From: Trichosphaerium sp. ATCC 40318
Lineage: Eukaryota; Protista; Tubulinea
Length of the DNA stretch: 64,000 nt
Assembly (NCBI GenBank): GCA_038496445.1
Contig: JALMLS010000322.1
Coordinates: 1,118,366 to 1,182,365, forward strand
Direction of reading: 5' to 3'
In this document: positions 46,686-58,827 of the stretch, piece after piece
How positions within the stretch are numbered: the first letter of the stretch is position 1
Layout: every line of letters starts with the position of its first letter
Made by a program: the position numbers and the translations under genes
Notes under the pieces: model-generated
Databases searched by the model: none
Seen by the model: the letters and a program-made list of their open reading frames with translations, nothing else
Told to the model about the DNA's origin: nothing

Positions 46686-49600
46686 ATGCGCGTTGCTATT
46701 ATAGGTTCTGGCGTAACTGGGCTTGCTGCCGCCTCACATCTCCACAAACACGGTGCGCGCTGCAAACCTAACGATACACTATTTTTCTCGTTTGTATCTC
46801 GCAAACAAACCAAAACTAAATTCGTTTTGTCAGGCTGCGACGTTGTTGTCTATGAGGCAAGCGATCACGTTGGTGGGCACGCTCACACCCAATACGTTAA
46901 CGGTAAGTACTTTTGTGCGAGCTGCGTAAAAAAAAAACCTACAGCGTCTAAGAACACTCTAGGTATACCTGTAGATACAGGTTTTATGGTTTTGAACAGA
47001 GTTACGTATCCAAACCTTCTGAAATGGTTCAAAGAGAGCGGTACGCAAAAGCAAACTTTTCAAAAAAAAAAAAGCTCTAGCTCCCTTTTGTGTTACGCTC
47101 TCATACTCATTAACTCTCTCAGGCGTGCTGTTAGAGAACTCGGAAATGTCGTTTTCTGTGAGTTTGAGCGACGCAAACATAGAGTGGAGTAGCGATGCGC
47201 CGTTTGCTTCCGCTGTACGTTTAAAACTATCGCTATTGTATTTTTCCGTGCTTCGTGCGCAAAGGATTTATTCCGTTTCGCCTTTTTGCACTTTTTATCA
47301 AACTGCGACAAAAACTTATTGCAAACATAGTCTAGCTACTATAGTCCCAATTTTTACGGCATGTTGTACGATATTACGCGATTTAAGCGTGATGCAACGC
47401 AGTTTGTGGAAAATAAAGAGCCAGACACTACAACAACCATGGAGCAGTTTTTGCAAAAACACGTACGACCGCATTTCCCAATTCTCAAAGGTCGGAACAT
47501 TTAGTTTCCGATCGGGCCAATTTCGCGTTTGTGGATCCAAACCAAAGACGAAAACTGCCCCATATACTCCATGTCCCTACCATCTCCTTACATTCTTTTT
47601 TTGTAGGGCTACGGCTACTACTTTATACACTACTATTTGGTACCAATGATGGCAGCGATTTGGTCATGTGACACGGGAGATACACTCAAGTTTCCAGCCC
47701 TGTTTCTCTTGAAGTTTTTTTATAATCACCACCTACTCCAAGTATCTGGTAGACCACTATGGCTCACTGTCAAAGGCCGCTGTGCGGATGGCTACGTTAG
47801 TAAGGTATGGCCTACCAGAAAAACAAACAATTCACCAGTCATTGACAACGTGCTACATAGGTAACAGCTCCTTTTGCTGACAAGATTCATGTAAACAATC
47901 CAGTAAAGGAGGTGTATGCTACCTCTACCGGCAAAGTAAAAGTAGTGGCTAATGATGGTATGTCTTTGTTTGAACCAATACATAGTTCATATTATATTTC
48001 GTGACTAATGGGGCCGCTTAGAGGATGAGTTTGATCGTGTCGTCTTTGCAAACCACGCACCAGATGTCTTGAAGATACTAAAGGATGTATTGCCTGAAGA
48101 GCAAGATGTACGTTGCGCTAGTGTTGGAACTTTTTCTGACGTGTGGGTGTTGTTAGATCCTCAGCAAATTCAAGTACCAAGAGAATGATGTATGGCTCCA
48201 CCACGACACTTCTCTCATGCCTAAAAACCCTGCAGCATGGGCCTGCTGGAATTTTATTGGAAATAGTGACTGTACGAGAAAAAACCCATTATCGACACTT
48301 GTGCTGTTGCTGACTGCTTGGTTAGTGGGATGTTGCGTCACATATTGGTTGAAGCGGTTGCAGAACATTGAATCAAATGATCAACCCATCTTCGTTACCC
48401 TTAACCCTAGCACTCCACCAAAGGCCGAGCTTGTTGTGAATCACTGGAAGGCATCACACCCAGTGCCATCATTGCACACTATCAATTCGGATGACCTCTT
48501 TTCAAAAATTCAAGGAAAACGAAACATGTGGTTTGCAGGTGCCTACCAAGGCAACGGTTTCCATGAAGATGGCTTCAAGAGCGGTATGGCTGCTGCCAAT
48601 GACTTGTTGCAAGGTACGTTCTAAGCGCCATACCTGTTGTGGCCTGTGGCTAACAGATTATTCGCTAGGACCATGGAAACCACTTCCAAACAATGTCATG
48701 CATCCGATCGGCATGGTCGATTCAATGTGCCGCAATGTTGTCCTTTCGTACCTCAAGTCAACCATCTCATCTGGTACACTCGAAGTACACGACATTGGAC
48801 ATGGTGTCGTACGTCTTTTGTTATTATTACTGGATTCTCTCTCTTGTTCTTGTGGCAAATCGACTAACACAGATGGACTTTAGACTACCATGGGCGATGG
48901 TAAGGAACCAAAGGCTATTCTGACTGTAATGCGTCCACAGTTTTACTCCAAGATGTGTTGGCGTTCCGCTCTAGGTACTATCACCCACACAGGTTATTGT
49001 TAGGCTGTTCCAGCTCACAATATTTCTAGGTCTTGCCGATGCTTTCATCGCCGGAGACGTATTGTGTGATGACCTTTGCATCTTGTTTGAACTCATTGTA
49101 AACAACAGAAAGAAGAAAGGTACGATATATCACTTTTTGGTTAAAGACAAGTTGTCTTTGTTTGTGATTGTAGTCGCTCACTCGCTTCTGTAGAAGGTGC
49201 TATTGCACCTAGTTTGATGACATCCATACTTGGACAATTGACAGCTTACTGGACGCACCAGAGCCGAAATAACTCGGTTAACAACACGCGTCAGAACATT
49301 CACGAACACTACGATCTAGGCAATGACTTTTTCAAACTGTTCTTGGACAAATCCATGTCGTACTCTTGCGGTATTTTTAACAAACCAGACGAAAGCCTTT
49401 ACGACTCTCAAATGAACAAAGTGAATCGGTTGATCGAGCTCGCTTGTGTCAAACCAGGAGATCGTGTGCTGGAGGTAAGGAGGAGCCTTCAACCAATGAC
49501 CTTATAAGTTATTAACCTTGTTTTCTGTAACAGATTGGTTTTGGTTGGGGTACAATGAGTATTGAGCTGGCCAAGTTGGGTTGTAAGGTAACTGGATTGA

Positions 49601-50489
49601 CTTTATCATCTGAGCAGAAGAAATACGCAGAACAGCGTGCTAAAGAAATGGTAAGTTAAACACGTGCATGACCCAATATCAGTGAGCTCAGTGTCGTTAT
49701 CAGTATCCACCTCCATCACTTACACTCGCACTCTTAGGGCGTTGCTGATAATATCTCTTTTGAGCTTGTAGATTACAGACAGTATGTACCTGAGCAGAAG
49801 TTTGACAGAATAGTTTCTTGTGAGATGCTGGAAGCAGTTGGTACGATTGGCTCAATATAAACTCCTTTTTTTTTTACTTGTTCTTTAACATATCGACTAA
49901 CTGTTGGCACTAGGTCATGATTATTTGCCTGACTTTTTTGATGTTTGCAACAAACTCCTCGGGCCAAATGGTATCCTGGTTGTCCAGGTCATTACTATCC
50001 CCGATAGCCGATACGAGGAGTACCGCAGGACAACAGACTTTATTCAGCAATACATCTTCCCAGGAGGTCACCTTCCATCCCTTGGCGCACTAACAGAGGC
50101 CATGGGCAAGAAGACGCCATTCATGGTGCGTATATTGTAATTTGTTCTTTGTGGTTTTTACTGACCGTGGTTTGTTCCTATCAAGGTTGAAAGCGTTGAC
50201 AATATTGGTCCACACTACGCAACAACATTACGTCATTGGTTGAACCTATTCAGAGCCAAGGTACATTTCTCACAACAAGTTGTAATGTTTACATGGTACA
50301 ATGTTGCTAAAATTGTGATTCTAGATTCCTGAAATCAGATCTCAAGGATTCTCTGACGAATTTATTCGCACGTGGGAGTACTATTTTCAATACTGCGAAG
50401 CCGGGTTCAAGACAAGAACTTTGTCTGATTTACATATAGTGTTCACGCGCCCTGGTAACTATGATCTAGATACACAATTGTACAAATAA
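46686..50489 (+). CDS. FAD-dependent (amine-oxidase-family) oxidoreductase fused to cyclopropane-fatty-acyl-phospholipid synthase-family SAM methyltransferase
   Basis: MRVAIIGSGVTGL; GGHAHT; VDTGFMVLNRVTYPNL; AWACWNF; GFHEDG; continues in frame to NIHEHYDLGNDFF, VLEIGFGWG, CEMLEAVGH, DFIQQYIFPGG, WEYYFQYCEAGF. Confidence 0.92.
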
Positions 50490-51140
50490 GTAAAACTATT
50501 TTTTTTCCAAAGTTGCTTTATTGCTTTTATGATAGATACTAACTACAATTAACTTGTTTGACCTCGATAATCACATTGAAAATCCAATGGATAACAGTAC
50601 CGTACTCTAAAAAGCGTATTCCTGGCATTTTGACCTACCTGTCTTTACTTTGGCTGTAACTTTAATGTGTAATTCTACATATCATATACGCCTGCCAATG
50701 CGTTTATACCTTGGTCTGTTACAAGGTGGCTTTGCAAACTTACTGTGTACACCGCTGCATCCTATAATACTTGCATGACACTGGCGTTTAAAGGTCATTT
50801 GAAAGCAATTCACAGCAGTGGCTAGGATCGTGATAAAGACCTTCAACTCACGTTTTAAATCCGATAAGAGCAAATACAATATTATTCCATATTCTTTTTC
50901 GTTCTACAAACAGCTTGTTGAGTAAGACAGCTTGAGATTTTTGTAATTATCGCACAAGAAAAAAAGTTGTACTTTTCTAACCAAAATAACTTAACAACTT
51001 ATCTTTGTGTCTTTACTTTGTTTACTTGTTAACTTGTTAATACAGTGCTTGGGGGTTTCTATTTACAAAGGGGTTGGTGAATTAGTGGTATGTACAATTT
51101 GATACAAAGCGAGGTTTGAAAAAAAAAACTGGAATGAAAT

Positions 51141-53879
51141 CTAGTTCATTTCGTCAAGTTTGGTGTATGTCGCAGCAGCCATTATCACGTCGCTGTTCAA
51201 ATCTCTTCGTAGGTGAAGGACACACCTCTCCAATGTGTGGTAAAGTTTGACGTGGTTTTCCATCAACGATAATTCTAAAAGGGGTTAGTGGCTAATCTCA
51301 AGAACACTAGTAAGGTAATCACAAGCTGCTCATTAAAAGCGCGCAAAGTTTCATGTGCGAGTAATGCTTGGGTGTACGTACTTCGCCATGTTTCTCTTTG
51401 GGACTTGTACAAGCAGTCGCGCATCATCGCCTTTGTAGGGTTCGATAGGAGCTGAGAATAGTCGCTCAATCCAACGTTAGGTACGATTGTTATATCTCCC
51501 TGTTTGATGCAGTTAGACAAACAACGATTTCAATAAAAGCAAGGACAGCAGTCCTGTCCGCATAGTGACCCGTTTTTGAAAAGATTGTAATGGTAATCAC
51601 GTACCTTGTATTGCTGTGACACCAAGTTATGTAACATGTTCAACTGTTGTGGCCACAAACCAAGATGTTCGAGCTGTTCGATTAAACAATTAGCACACGT
51701 GTACATACATATTTCTGCAATACAAAAAACCGTGCGTCTCAATGTGGTGTACCTGTAAGATGCGATGCTTAAGTTCGGACGTTATACAATATGCTGCTTT
51801 ACTAAGCAAGCTGTCGTTGATCTGATCTGTAGAGCTAATGAATGGTATAACGTGGGGATTAACCTAAAAATAAGGTCAACAAAACGTGCATGTGAATACT
51901 GAAGAGTAGGGTTTACCTGAGAAACAATAAAGTGATTCACGTTAAACAGCTCACGCAACCGTATCATAGGCAAGTCATTCTCAACGCTGCCATCAGAGCA
52001 CTTGATGCCCTTAGGATCATACCGTCCAATATTGCCATTCTCGTCTTTTGATTGAAGCTAAAAAACCGACGTGAATAACAAAAAGACATGCTTAAAAGCC
52101 AAAATGTAAAATATAGATGCCACGCGTGTAAGTAGATTGTTGAAGCTCTAAATGTGGTTCACCTACCTCTACAGGTTCGTATAAAAATGCTAGCGCACAT
52201 GAAGCGAGTGCTGCAGAGAAAACAAGAACCTACCCGAGGTTTAACGTCAACGTGAGGAAAACAAACAAGTTCAATGACTAGCGCGCGTACATTAGGTGCT
52301 GTGATGTAGTTTAAGAGGCGCGGATGATCGAACGTCTTGTTGCTGCACACTGTAATGTTGAGGATACAGCCAGTGCGCTGGTATGCCTCTTGAAAGGTGA
52401 CATTGCCGATATTCGATCTAATGCAATCACCGAGCTTATTGATGTCCATCAACACGCCTAGAGACTGGAATCAACAAAAATAACGGGCGATGATAGAGCT
52501 AAAGAGTGGAAAGAAGGATTGTTTGTACCTTTTGTCATTAATCGTGCCAATTTTCTGTTTAGTGATCCTTCAGAATCGAATGCCTCAAATTGTAGATCTT
52601 CAAATTCGTTTTCAAGCATCTTTGAGAGCTCAGATCTGGTCTTTGTACCTAAATTCATCTTTTTTTTAAAATGGATGCCTCGCCATTGTTTAAAACTTTT
52701 TTCACTAGCGTACCAACGAATGAAGCAATAATAGAACCAATACTAGATCCAGAAATAATTTTGGGTAAAATATCTAGATGAACAAATCAGAAAAAGCGAA
52801 TAACTTGTCCAGTTTTAGTTCTTTTTTTTCTATTTTGGATTTTTTTTGAAAAAAGATCTTCTCGACGTACCATTGTCGTGTAATACTTTGATGACACCCA
52901 AATGGTATAATCCTAATGTAGCACCACCACTGAGACACAATGCTGTTCTACCATATGCTTGACGTGCGGCAAAGAAGAATTCAAACTTTTGCTGCGTATT
53001 AATGTAAGTAGAAATCACGTGGCAGTATTTTCGTTTTTGGATTGTGTGGGTTCAAAAATAAAAGCTCCGTTGATACAGCTAACACAGACCACGTGGGTAA
53101 TGGTGTAATCTGTGCTAGGCGCATACTCGGGTATTCTGTAATTTGGGTGACTAGCGCTAGAGCCGCGGTTTTGGTACCTGTAGAGATACTGTTTTAAAGT
53201 TGCTGTGACATATGATGCGAAGAAGCTCGTCTGTTTCGTTTGTGTACTCCTCTATCAATTGTTTGGTACCAAAGTAACATTTCTCGTATAGTTTTGGGTT
53301 TCCAATGCCGGAAAAATTACGTCGCATCCCTTTAGGAAGATTATAAGCAAAATGTCGTCCCAAAAAAAAAAAAAAAAAAAAAAAAAACAACAAGAAAAAA
53401 AATTGTACCGTTACGGAGGAATAATAAAACTTCTTGAATATTCTCTGCGCTCAGTTTTGCCTTGTAGTATCGTAGCATAGCTAAGCGGTTTCGAATTGTT
53501 GTGTAGTCGTAAATATTCGATTCATCCATCTCTTTCCATTCATTGTTTCCTGAAATTCGCGTTAAAGGGCTGTGGCTTCGGGTATAGCAACACTACCTAG
53601 CTTTTTGTCGAGGGATAACGCTGCTTCTTTCCAAGTGGCGTAATCCTCGCTACTATCGAGTACATTGGTCAACCTTTCAAGTTCTTCTTTGTCTGGGTAT
53701 ACTGTTGTGAGTAGTGCCTAAAAATGTTACACTCTGAATTCCGCTCACCACGGAGATGTATATACATGTGCTGGTGCCCTTTAGAAGGGTGGCGCACAAA
53801 AGTAGGCTTTTTGCTCAAAGGTTGTTGAATGTACCTTTGGTAAGAACGCACTAGCTGCCCAGTACGCGTATGAAGTCAT
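51141..53879 (-). CDS. patatin-domain triacylglycerol lipase (TGL3/4/5-SDP1 type)
   Basis: GTKQLIEEY; [20 protein letters not shown]; IISGSSIGS (GxSxG); [10 protein letters not shown]; [23 protein letters not shown]. Confidence 0.9.
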
Positions 53880-54333
53880 TTTTATGCTAGAAATTTACTA
53901 CTGTACTTGGGTTATCCTGCCAATCACAAACTTTCAGTTACTTATATAGATACCTAGTGCTAAAGTGCTGGGTGTGGCTGTTGACTTATTTGAATTTTGA
54001 AATGATTTTTGTTTTTGCTGTCGCTTAATGTGGCGTCTTTAAGCACTGCGAGCCCATACTGTAGTAATGATTAAATGCAACTTACGACACTGACCCATGT
54101 CTGTGTAGCATCGTAAAACGTCAGTATGCGAAAATAGTTTCAAGGAAGCCAATTCAGGTATTACTACCAATCCAACTATTAAAAATTTCTGATTTGTATT
54201 TATACATGGTGGAACTACAACGTAGATCATATGTGGCGAAATTGCTATACATGATGACGTGATGAATTCCTCTGGGAGTTCAAATATGATTAACCAATTT
54301 AGAGACAGATCGCCACTACTGTAGCCAATGAGG

Positions 54334-56127
54334 TTATTGAGGTTTTACCTTTGGGTGTGGAATGTATGGCACGCCACTGCAAATGAGTTTAAGCGCTTGC
54401 CAATGTATACCAGCAAAGACCTTGAACGTCATCAAAGGATGCTTCGCTAAGATCCACAGTAGATTAGATTGTGTCACTTCATGCCTTTGCACGTGCAATG
54501 ACGCCTATGACAGAAAAATTGGTATGTAAAGTAAAAAAACCCTTCCGTACAATAAAATTGAGCTTTTGTGTCGTTTCGTGTGTCATAAGCCAAGTCATCT
54601 GTAGCAAACGGGTTAGTACGCTGTTTCAGTATAGAAAAATTGGATGCATACATTCCAGTTCTCGTTGGGCGTATCGTACTTTGCTCGATAGTCATAATGC
54701 ATTTTAAAAAATGGAGAAACATGCCTGGACAACGCCGATATTAGCAGATAGACTCAAAGGCAGAAGAAATAAAAACCATGACGTACATTATTTTAGTGAA
54801 TTTGTCTGTCATTCTCTTGGGGTTTAGTGGAGTGCAGGCGTGGGTGTAGTAGCATTTTTCACCCCTAGCACAAATGAGTTAGATTTACTGGCGTTGATCG
54901 GTGTATACAGCGGTACCAAGGTGTGTTGGTTACTTCAGAGAGCATGGCGACCAGCTTGCCAGATTCATCCTTGCACCAATAATACGAGATTGGATTAAAA
55001 GTGTATCCCCAGTACCGCCAGTTTGTAAGCAAGTAAACCTTACCTAACATTAAAACAGGTTAGTATTTCTGAAATGCAGGAAGCTGCCTTATGTTCAAAA
55101 ACACAAACCTGACACTTTCTTTCCTGTATCTTGGAATACCTTTTCGTGCACTTGTTCACGACTCAAGTATTCTGATTTGCGTAAATAACCCAACGCTGGC
55201 TTTTGTGAGTCTCCTACAAGTGAACTGTTTTTAGTTCATCATTTATACTAGATATTGACCTTTGACCAGTGCGTACCTGTGTCATTGCTTGACCATAGCC
55301 AATACTGATCAAAGGCATAATCAGTATCATCGTTGAGTTCAATCATCATCATGAAAACATCATAAGAAAATTTATGATCACGTGGCGATGTATCCGTCTT
55401 GAAACGACGATGGAATACTGATCCAGCGTAGATGTATTTCTCTACATGAAATGCTCTGGATGCTAGAATCTTTTCATTCGGGCCGTTCAGGTCGCCGACA
55501 AGTCCAAATAAATTGAGTACAACGAGCACTTGGTAGGTCATATCGAATTCCCACAACTGATGTGCAAAATTAGCGGCTAAAACGTCCGCTTTGTGATTGT
55601 TTTGATAACCTGTCAACTGTCAACAATGTGTTCAACCGTGTCGTGGAGGATAAGGGTGTTACCTTGACCTGCTGTGAGTAGCGCTACAATCGTGTTATTC
55701 ACGCCATCCGCTTTGTACGATTTGGTGCCATAAAACCCCACTTCGAGGCATCTGTTAGCGAGATAAAGCAAAATCTCTGGTATTATAACGCCACTCAACA
55801 CGCCGAACCTACAATGCGTTAAAACAATACGGATTTAACGCTCACCATAACGCAGATACCACTGACGCTGCTATCCATACAATTACGCGCAACAGGGTTG
55901 ACGCAAAACTCGTTCTTAGCGCCTACTGTTCTTCAATCATTACGCAAATGCGCTTAAAGTACCTTTGAGTGTATATTGACGCATGACAAGAGATAAAGAA
56001 CGGTAGTTGTAAAAGCTGGTGCGGTAAAAAGTTTCTCCTTGTGCCTCAGGACGATATTACTTGCTACTTGCCGCCATTGCGCTTGTAAAATGCCAATGGC
56101 GGTTAGCTGTACGAGATATCTTATCAT
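54334..56127 (-). CDS. DUF1365 (UfaO-like) protein with N-terminal degenerate delta-9 fatty-acid-desaturase-like domain
   Basis: DUF1365 motifs IYAGSVFHRRF..HKFSY, LLTNWRYWGYTFNPISYYWC, EVTNTPWGE, HVSPFF, IHWQALKL..GVPYIPHP; N-terminal NNTIVALLTAGQGYQNNHKA..WEFDMTYQVL..LFGLVGDL. Confidence 0.85.
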
Positions 56128-56271
56128 GACGATTCCCTTTATTCGCGCTATATCCTAATGGCACGTTATATAGCGTATGCACCAAATGTAGGTTTATTGC
56201 GCTTGAGACAGCATCACTTAAGCGAGTAGACGAAGTCGCTCTTATAAGTGTTCCAAAAAACCTAAACCACT

Positions 56272-58827
56272 ATGGCCACTATTCGCGACATTGTACTAGG
56301 CATACGCCACGCGGTATGTAAGCGTATTCACATACCATACATTAACAATTATCAAGACAAGCGCTGCAGATAAAAACCAGGTTCAAAAATTGACTTCGGA
56401 GGAATATAGAGATATACAGCGGTTCAAATTACGTGGGTAAGCGCAAAATAACAAGTAATGTTTTTTGAGTTGTGCACGTGGTTTGGATAGCAGATCTACG
56501 CCAAAACAAAACGCAAAACAGTCTGTGTATACGCCCTAACACTGTCCTTTAGAGACGAAGAATTTGAGATAAAAGCCTACGCTCCTCACGTATTCCATCA
56601 CTTGCGCAAGATACATGGTATTAGCGCCAAGTCCTTTTTGGTGCGTCTTCTTTTTTTTGTAATGTCTGTTTTCGCCTGTCTTGTATTGCTTGTATCGTCC
56701 ATTGTTACAAACGGTATTAGGGTTCTTGGATATTACCCGCTAAAAAAGAGGATGTAACCCTGGATGAGTCGACAGGGCGGTCAGGATCAATGTTCTACAT
56801 GACCGAGGATAAGAAGTATTTTTTCAAGACGATCCTACACGCAGAGGCACGTGTCGATGGTTGTCACTTTTTGTTTTTGACATTGGCACAGGTTGGTGCG
56901 TTGATGGTAATGTTAGAAGACTACGTCAAGGTATGCCCGGTTTTTAACAGTGAGTTTCTTGTGGATATTGAGTTGCCTACTACTACAGCATTTGAACAAA
57001 CACAAGCGATCTTTCATAATGAAAGTCTTTGGGATGTATCGCTTAGAAACTGGACGGTAATGACGGTGTAGTAAACATGCTTTGACTGATTTCCCTATTA
57101 GAACAGTGAAGCCAACACAAACATGGTTGATTGTTATGGGTAATGTGTTACCTACAAGACTGAAGATACACGAAAAGTACGGCTTTCTGAACGGTTTAGT
57201 AAAAGTTAATTGTTGTGTTCTCAAGATATGATTTAAAAGGACGAACAGCAAAACCTGGAAAGAGTTACGCTGAGCGTGGAAAGACGTCTGAAGGACCTGT
57301 GAAGGATAATGAGATTAATAGAATATTAAAGTTTATTCAGTACTACTACTACAACCACCTCTGTAAACAGTGCTGACAAAGGTTAGTGAAGACGACAAGA
57401 AGTTATTCATCAAGCAGGTGACGGACGATATAAATGTAAGCACTTTTTTTGACGCCAGTTTTTTTGACTTAAATAATTGTTTAGCTTCTTGGCAGGAAAA
57501 ATATTATGGATTATTCCCTGTTAGTTGGTTAGGCCCAATTCTTATTTACTTTTTGTAACATCCGTGTGACAGGTATTCACCATGTTGGGGAACTTGACAA
57601 GGACGAGATGGATAAAGTAGATCAAGTTATTGAAACTGGTTCTGATCCTGAAAGGCCACGTGATATTGCAGAAAATGCTTCAGAGGTTCATCTTTAAATA
57701 TTATTTCTTGTGTATTTGTATTAACTCTTCTTGAAGGATGAAAAATCCAGCGATTCTGGAGAAGCAAAAGCACCAGAGAGTGGTGCTGAAGAAAAAACAG
57801 AAAAGAAACATGGAAGGCAAAGGAAGAAGGCTGTATCTGAGGGCGCAAAATCTAAGCCAAAAAAAAAGAAGGAATCATTTGGCGAAAACTTGTATACTGT
57901 CATGGTAATACCCCATGAATTAAGGTCTTTCTTTAAAACCAACGTAGGTTGACGATATAGCTCCGCTTAAATCAGATATAAACACGTGGGACACCAAGAA
58001 GATATTGGAAGAGGAACGTTTCATGGCAGAAAGCTGCAAAAGGTATGTTTGCTTATTGCTAGCCATAATAACGGTTTTTTTCTTCAAGTCCTTTTGGATT
58101 CGGTATGGAATGTGAGAATCCTACCACTGGTGGTAAAGAGGCACGACATGCGTAATAGACATATCGTGAATAATTGTGCTGATATATTAGATTGTGTTTA
58201 TAGGCATCATCGATTGTCTCACCAACTACCATCTTGGCAAGCGTGTTGCTCATTTTATGAAAAAGTTTATTTGGTATGTGACTCTTTAAGGCATTTCGTT
58301 TAGAAACCAACATCACCCTAATTTTGTGCGCTTAGGGAGTCTTCAACACTATCAACGGCATAACTTTTCATTTCATTAGAGTACGATGTACTAATTGTGC
58401 TAACTGTAGGTCCGTGCCGAGTTTTATGCTGAAAGATTCTGGCATTTTATGACCCACGATTTAATCGGTGAAGAAGTAGATCCAGACAAGGAAGAAACAA
58501 GGCACGTGACCTTTTTATTTTCAGTGTACGTTTCAACTCAAATTGTACTAACTAGCAGCTCGATTAGGATAAAGACAGACGAGCCACAGCTCATTCCAGA
58601 GCTTCGTGTTAACACTGATAGGTAACCCATTACCCATTCAGTTAAATGTTCCTCCTTACACATGTGCCAATAGGGTAAGAAAGCGCAGTCGTAGTTTGGG
58701 ATATGGCAACGTACGAAGGAACACCATCAGCGGGCACACGCCGTTTAAAGGTGAAAAAAAAGAAGGAGAAGAGAAAGATGGTGGCAACAAGGATCAGGAC
58801 GCTGAAGAACAACATTCTTTTGAGTGA
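56272..58827 (+). CDS. phosphatidylinositol-phosphate kinase (PIP5K family)
   Basis: KAYAPHVFHHLR; STGRSGSMFYMTEDKKYFFKTI; YDLKG; IMDYSLLVG; GIIDCLTNY; FYAERF. Confidence 0.9.

Follow-up and report, generated by a model that had tools for sequence, protein, structure and literature searches.

Why should a protist keep what looks like the ruin of a fatty-acid desaturase in front of a lipid-modifying enzyme? The question is raised by a minus-strand gene of Trichosphaerium sp. ATCC 40318, located in the 64,000-nucleotide stretch of DNA analyzed here (the window; assembly GCA_038496445.1, contig JALMLS010000322.1, positions 1,118,366 to 1,182,365). The C-terminal part of its product belongs to DUF1365, the family of UfaO, which uses O2 to turn the methylated dienoic acyl chain of a phospholipid into a furan ring (PMC7380195). 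The biochemistry of UfaO has been established for two alpha-proteobacterial proteins only (PMC7380195), and in Arabidopsis a separate UFAO1 resides on lipid droplets, as does a UfaM/UfaD fusion (PMC10940516, PMC13247531). Our preferred interpretation, which we hold to be probable, is that the N-terminal part of the Trichosphaerium protein is a pseudo-desaturase acting as a membrane tether or scaffold for an oxygenase of the UfaO type, and that it descends from a desaturase once fused whole to UfaO.

The structure of the gene was established by aligning cDNA contigs from three public runs (X1 to X3, from two studies) to positions 53900-56700 of the window. Comparison of the spliced, cDNA-like contigs with the genome defines nine introns (Table 1), all of which are GT..AG on the minus strand (CT..AC on the plus strand). 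Exons 1 to 4 are joined by a single contig (X3 record 11), and X2 record 5 spans the region from the 3′ untranslated region (UTR) into exon 1. When the exons are joined by script, a single open frame of 440 codons extends from an AUG at 56127 to a stop codon at 54336-54334; this AUG is the first of the mRNA and is preceded by an in-frame stop. X2 record 6 ends at 56186 in loose letters that we take to be a SMART-type template-switch oligo, in which case the cDNA 5′ end near 56186 would be the capped 5′ end; the script detected no AUG within the resulting 59-nt leader. The predicted 440-aa product is identical to P0149, an MMETSP transcript protein of Trichosphaerium sp. that served as the reference sequence for later comparisons. 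The original prediction, drawn from the DNA sequence alone, had located three of the introns within 1-2 nt of those defined by cDNA, had quoted a peptide string that matches residues 92-170 exactly, and had proposed that a desaturase-like region runs in frame into DUF1365. A DUF1365 starting downstream on a separate mRNA would have contradicted that proposal; the transcripts show instead one mRNA, with one 440-codon open reading frame (ORF). Run X3 also contains an alternative 3′ splice site in intron 6 (55214-55276), with the acceptor at 55225 rather than 55214. The 11 nt gained in this way change the reading frame, and the isoform is presumably minor and unproductive.

P0149 clusters with P0001, a 249-aa fragment from EukProt/MMETSP labelled Trichosphaerium sp. 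ATCC 40318 (Amoebozoa). Because the P0001 model begins at Met153 and Pfam is blank over residues 1-188, one could suppose that the region upstream is a leader that either escapes translation or has no function, and that the protein is a soluble DUF1365 enzyme starting at Met153 (MTYQ...). We find this hardly credible: P0001 lacks its C-terminal end as well and is hence a partial model, no AUG lies ahead of 56127 in the mRNA, the frame remains open for 152 codons through three introns, the 440-aa ORF was called in the MMETSP data, and coding sequence in 12 or more other proteins is homologous to the N-terminal region. On the basis of the cDNA contigs and the frame script, we rejected initiation at Met153 as the source of the main product. 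The genome and the cDNA back the 440-aa P0149, not P0001, and the truncated 249-aa database model is due for replacement.

The DUF1365 domain is intact. It scores 211.5 bits against PF07103 (cutoff 25), over profile positions 1-234 of 235, and is recognized exon by exon in exons 4, 6, 8 and 10, exons 1-3 being without any Pfam match. Relative to alignment columns derived from 16 bacterial members, 20 of the 21 invariant positions and all 14 near-invariant ones are kept; the family-invariant motifs are H..R, FNPIS, NTPWGE, K..HVSPF and YPLMT..IxWxA. A full DUF1365 domain is likewise what characterizes the UfaO proteins of Cereibacter sphaeroides and Rhodopseudomonas palustris (RSP1090 and RPA2570) and Arabidopsis UFAO1 (AT1G30130). 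Bacterial UfaO measures ~250 aa and has no N-terminal domain, whereas the window protein adds a hydrophobic desaturase remnant of 180 residues. AlphaFold2 models the DUF1365 part as a beta-barrel with a predicted local distance difference test (pLDDT) score >90, and this barrel dominates Foldseek searches made with the full-length model. The nearest PDB folds of residues 185-440 are nitrobindin and Ycf58, which resembles fatty-acid-binding proteins (Foldseek probability 0.99, E ~3e-3, a weak match); the modelled fold hints that UfaO may hold its acyl substrate within a calycin-like barrel.

The desaturase ancestry of the N-terminal domain escapes Pfam, as FA_desaturase gave no match at E-values up to 10 with either residues 1-190 or individual exons as query, and emerges from other comparisons, in which the resemblance is far above chance. 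In BLASTP, residues 1-180 match a Chondromyces acyl-CoA desaturase (E 9e-12) and, over residues 87-178, the desaturase half of P0002 (E 4e-17), a EukProt protein (Clim_evm28s156) whose prefix we take to denote Corallochytrium limacisporum. A profile built from the degenerate N-terminal domains alone (P0149 and its relatives) retrieved two significant matches from the PDB, both of them SCD1 (4ymk and 4zyo, E 2e-4), the third-ranked match being RnfA with an E-value of 0.95. Alignment of the domain to a bacterial desaturase with hhalign reached a probability of 99% (E 9e-18), and its look-alikes according to a protein language model are FA_desaturase clusters, which we treat as a lead only. The matching core corresponds to a transmembrane (TM) segment equivalent to TM4, a relic of the NxxxH motif (NRCLE), a relic of His-box III and the C-terminal helices. 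It shares with membrane Delta9 desaturases (DesC-type; SCD1 4ymk/4zyo; PF00487) the patterns G..Y, NN..ALLT.G.G..NNH and WE.D.TY, but differs from them in the absence of a Pfam match, the retention of a single ligand histidine out of nine and the deletion of the box II segment. Further upstream, MAFFT and hhalign alike aligned LRHKEKLFTAPAFT onto HRYFSHRSFRTS (His-box I), the latter with an E-value of 0.12; the hhalign comparison of residues 1-110 with the desaturase profile, at E 0.12, was not significant. A clearer form of box I, HRILVHNSFATS, is kept in the relative P0138. Judged by these alignments, only residues 87-178 are demonstrably desaturase-derived, and we make no such claim for the residues encoded by exons 1 and 2. 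Searches of the PDB with phmmer, using exon 3 and exon 4, brought up nothing except a pantothenate-kinase match (E 0.018), which we dismiss as due to chance, since it extends across the domain junction and does not recur in the profile search.

With one of nine iron-binding histidines left and the His-box II segment missing, the domain has very probably lost its desaturase activity; by the same count, all 38 free-standing desaturases examined have nine of nine. These results agree with what had been predicted from the letters, namely a resemblance to the C-terminus of Delta9 desaturases, a His-box III reading QNNHK in place of HNNHH, the absence of boxes I and II and a probable loss of catalysis.

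The original prediction knew of no other case of this architecture, but it is not unique. Besides P0002, which represents an intact version, at least 12 further eukaryotic fusion proteins were identified (P0003, P0004, P0005, P0008, P0015, P0020, P0138, P0140, P0142, P0143, P0147 and members of their clusters) by means of a whole-library search of representatives and a region-restricted search with P0002. Searching for homologues with P0149 itself brought up chiefly bacterial DUF1365 proteins of 250 aa and failed to recover the fusions. The latter are present in public databases, one of them annotated as just "stearoyl-CoA desaturase". Pfam FA_desaturase and DUF1365 are both matched in P0002, P0004 and P0008. 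A single BLASTP high-scoring segment pair spans the domain junction, aligning residues 87-440 of the window protein with residues 195-566 of P0002 (42% identity over 380 columns, E 4e-88). The two proteins have in common their domain order, their junction and their clade in the DUF1365 tree. They differ in that P0002 retains three His boxes and the NxxxH motif, with nine of nine histidine ligands, and matches mouse SCD1 (4ymk) with an E-value of 1.5e-24, whereas the window protein is a decayed form whose desaturase part is ~110 residues shorter. With its complete set of ligands, P0002 may be bifunctional. Read-through of two genes was rejected as an explanation for the fusion, given that the junction lies within a single exon, exon 4 in Trichosphaerium, and is common to distant relatives. 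In the DUF1365 tree, a quick, unrooted search without bootstrap or outgroup, the 12 fused proteins, the window protein and three unfused eukaryotic proteins split from the 86 others, mostly bacterial, with an SH-aLRT support of 99. In P0011, an unfused member of this clade, the desaturase body is replaced by one hydrophobic helix at the N-terminus, which fits a requirement for some membrane anchor.

Among the fusions, P0002 is the sole protein with an intact desaturase; the others keep one to six of the nine ligand histidines, and the box II segment is deleted in P0015 and P0138 as it is in the window protein. Four residues, G108, N119, E150 and D152, do not vary among the degenerate domains, and three of them (G108, E150 and D152) remain constant when true desaturases are included. 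For two pairs of relatives with retrievable DNA, dN/dS is 0.22 in the degenerate desaturase domain and 0.18 in DUF1365 (P0004 and P0020), and 0.16 and 0.09, respectively (P0140 and P0147); with dS between 0.8 and 1.3, these are rough estimates. The degenerate desaturase domains of these relatives are under purifying selection. Such constraint, together with the four invariant residues and the fact that the reductant and cofactor of UfaO are not known (PMC7380195), could also be read as a sign that the N-terminal domain is still catalytic or binds metal through non-histidine ligands, as an atypical oxidase or desaturase that aids UfaO by providing activated oxygen or a double bond. We consider this very unlikely, as eight of nine ligand histidines and the whole box II segment are gone from a domain whose 38 free-standing counterparts retain all nine, and as different ligands have been lost in each fusion lineage, which speaks against a common alternative site.

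Our results are best accommodated by the tether or scaffold interpretation. The gene would encode a 440-residue membrane-bound enzyme of the UfaO type, of which the C-terminal 250 residues are an intact DUF1365 domain. The N-terminal ~180 residues would be the leftover of a Delta9 acyl-CoA desaturase of bacterial type, formerly fused whole to UfaO as it still is in Corallochytrium. With the His-box II segment deleted and eight of the nine iron-binding histidines replaced, no di-iron centre should be possible in this lineage, and the remaining parts would be one or more hydrophobic transmembrane hairpins and the C-terminal cytosolic helices. Consistent with a hairpin, a stretch of 47 hydrophobic residues, with a Kyte-Doolittle maximum of 2.21 over 19 residues, aligns with TM3-TM4 of P0002; AlphaFold2 renders it as a single long helix with moderate confidence. 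Desaturase catalysis would have been lost repeatedly, by different routes in different lineages, and may have become dispensable through a presumed separate Delta9 desaturase of the cell, while the body of the domain would have been kept under selection. A role for the remnant as tether, scaffold or substrate-presenting element is plausible: it may keep the UfaO barrel at the cytosolic face of the endoplasmic reticulum (ER) or of the lipid-droplet membrane, and may perhaps still grip an acyl chain, allowing UfaO to meet the lipid produced by the neighbouring UfaD-UfaM fusion enzyme. Several observations weigh against this interpretation. Residues 1-86 lack significant similarity to desaturases, the selection figures come from relatives and not from the window gene, the AlphaFold2 model of the N-terminal domain is poor (pLDDT 68.6, predicted template modelling score 0.38), and Foldseek found no SCD-like fold in the PDB for this low-confidence model.

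The neighbouring gene, on the opposite strand, is amine-oxidase-like (UfaD-like) at its N-terminus and CMAS-like (UfaM-like) at its C-terminus, and is presumed to be a single UfaD-UfaM fusion gene. With a weakly matched patatin-like exon located between it and the DUF1365 gene, the region 46686-53018 looks like a candidate cluster for the synthesis of modified fatty acids. The same pairing recurs in relatives. In two large eukaryotic metagenome contigs, L001 (6039-11896) and L093 (2046-7896), a desaturase-like/DUF1365 gene of ~630 aa stands head-to-head with an Amino_oxidase and CMAS fusion gene of 1006 or 999 aa, ~950 bp apart, both genes of each pair being apparently intron-free; L002 and L092 contain Amino_oxidase fragments upstream of the fusion gene. 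This setting bears on a variant in which the remnant is a hairpin that targets the protein to lipid droplets rather than a general ER anchor, UfaO then working beside a patatin-like lipase on triacylglycerol-bound chains. Plant UFAO1 and the UfaM/UfaD fusion are indeed located on lipid droplets (PMC10940516, PMC13247531), Gly and Pro occur in the centre of the 47-residue hydrophobic stretch, and the patatin-like exon sits between both pathway genes. This variant nevertheless strikes us as distinctly unlikely, since lipid-droplet targeting is a pure inference, the patatin match (21.4 bits) falls below the Pfam gathering score of 27.7 bits, and no lipase adjoins the fusion gene in L001, L093, L092 or L002.

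Table 1. Coordinates of the fusion gene, its domains and its neighbours in the window
Feature	Position	Strand	Basis
Full coding sequence, 10 exons, 440 codons and stop	54334..56127	−	cDNA introns, frame script, identity to P0149
Exons 1-5	56127-55963, 55922-55846, 55808-55663, 55609-55277, 55213-55109	−	
Exons 6-10	55043-54917, 54864-54787, 54724-54652, 54598-54551, 54504-54334	−	
Introns, set 1 (plus-strand coordinates)	54505-54550, 54599-54651, 54725-54786, 54865-54916, 55044-55108		
Introns, set 2 (plus-strand coordinates)	55214-55276, 55610-55662, 55809-55845, 55923-55962		
5′ UTR, 59 nt	56128..56186	−	Loose-end oligo on X2 record 6, UTR scan by script
3′ UTR, as far as contigs extend	54196..54333	−	X2 record 5 and X3 record 8 from 54196; X1 record 2 from 54205
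Possible His-box I vestige LRHKEKLFTAPAFT, residues 27-40, not significant	56008..56049	−	MAFFT and hhalign alignment
Hydrophobic stretch, 47 residues (56-102), likely TM3/TM4-equivalent hairpin	55745..55922	−	Hydropathy, alignment; intron 55809-55845 inside
Demonstrably desaturase-derived core (by sequence comparison), residues 87-178	55464..55792	−	BLASTP, PDB profile match, hhalign; intron 55610-55662 inside
His-box III relic QNNHK (canonical HNNHH), residues 132-136	55590..55604	−	Alignments
DUF1365 (UfaO-like), residues 189-436	54349..55433, introns inside	−	Pfam PF07103
Neighbour gene, amine-oxidase-type (UfaD-like) N-terminus and CMAS-type (UfaM-like) C-terminus	46686..50140	+	Pfam on single ORF pieces (Amino_oxidase 46686-47189; CMAS 49214-49504 and 49904-50137)
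Patatin-like exon, weak, between UfaD/UfaM exons and DUF1365 gene	52833-53018	−	21.4 bits, gathering score 27.7

Bacterial ufa operons resemble the window in having UfaD-like and UfaM-like genes as neighbours of DUF1365, and a survey of 80 bacterial DUF1365 loci, taken from one-genome-per-species contigs, extends this resemblance to the desaturase. A co-directional, tightly packed operon of desaturase, UfaD-like, DUF1365 and UfaM-like genes was counted in 21 of the 80 loci, about a quarter of the sample. A Delta9-type acyl-CoA desaturase was matched in 22 of the 80 loci (one of them a partial match). In 19 of these 22 (L020, L022, L027, L031, L038, L041, L042, L049, L062, L063, L065-L067, L071, L073, L076, L078, L083 and L086), the desaturase gene is followed on the same strand by UfaD-like, DUF1365 and, where the contig reaches far enough, UfaM-like genes, neighbours being separated by anything from a few bases to tens of bases. 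Taxa with this desaturase-containing operon include Xanthomonas, Lysobacter, Gemmatimonadota, Planctomycetota and Nitrospirota, as exemplified by Xanthomonas prunicola (L071), Lysobacter (L073) and Gemmatimonadota (L020 and L091), L091 exhibiting the longer order CMAS, DUF2878, DUF1295, DUF6134, lipocalin, desaturase, amine oxidase, DUF1365 and CMAS. Three other ufa operons have no desaturase. The same four activities (Delta9-type desaturase, amine-oxidase-type UfaD, DUF1365 and CMAS-type methylase) are linked in bacteria and in eukaryotes, but as four separate genes in the former and as two fusion genes, desaturase-UfaO and UfaD-UfaM, in the latter. Since the eukaryotic fusions join members that are not adjacent in the operon, they are not simple read-through fusions.

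The original prediction had interpreted the gene as a relic of a bacterial desaturase-oxidoreductase-DUF1365-CFAS operon. Such an operon does exist in bacteria; the derivation from it is not settled by the DUF1365 tree, in which the eukaryotic clade could not be placed beside the desaturase-containing operons and no bacterial donor was identified. Loci with the desaturase operon are scattered on this tree (10 changes). Nor do three bacterial sequences closely related to the fused desaturase domain point clearly to a donor: one is located in a ufa operon, another is not, and the third lies at a contig end. An elaborate scenario, in which an early amorphean acquired the whole des-ufaD-ufaO-ufaM operon and compacted it into two fusions, the conserved pseudoenzyme keeping its acyl-chain tunnel and lifting the phospholipid-bound chain from the bilayer to the UfaO barrel, seems to us doubtful. 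If true, this locus would be the first tractable gene cluster for furan (or related modified) fatty acids in a eukaryote other than a plant.

Whatever the precise role of the remnant, the locus broadens what is available on eukaryotic furan fatty acid synthesis, for which the published evidence consists only of homology to bacterial UfaM, UfaD and UfaO and of lipid-droplet localization in Arabidopsis. The literature on UfaO, UfaD and UfaM covers bacteria and plant lipid droplets only, and in the literature on DUF1365 and these three proteins we found no account of a desaturase-DUF1365 fusion or of an operon that contains a desaturase. In the window, a eukaryotic UfaO homologue verified by cDNA is physically linked to a presumed UfaD-UfaM fusion gene. 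Several protists possess a UfaO fused to the body of a Delta9 desaturase, intact in one lineage, decayed and yet selectively kept in others, forming a natural series from a putatively bifunctional enzyme to a pseudoenzyme-enzyme fusion; this series suggests that UfaO needs a membrane-embedded partner. In bacteria, a Delta9 desaturase gene ahead of ufaD-ufaO-ufaM constitutes a common operon variant for which we found no published description.

The cDNA contigs also delineate a divergent gene on the plus strand, with a 5′ end at 56250 and introns at 56313-56355 and 56436-56551. This 5′ end and that of the fusion gene on the minus strand (56186) are ~63 bp apart, and both are marked by loose ends of the template-switch oligo. 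The interval 56186-56250 is a very compact bidirectional promoter.

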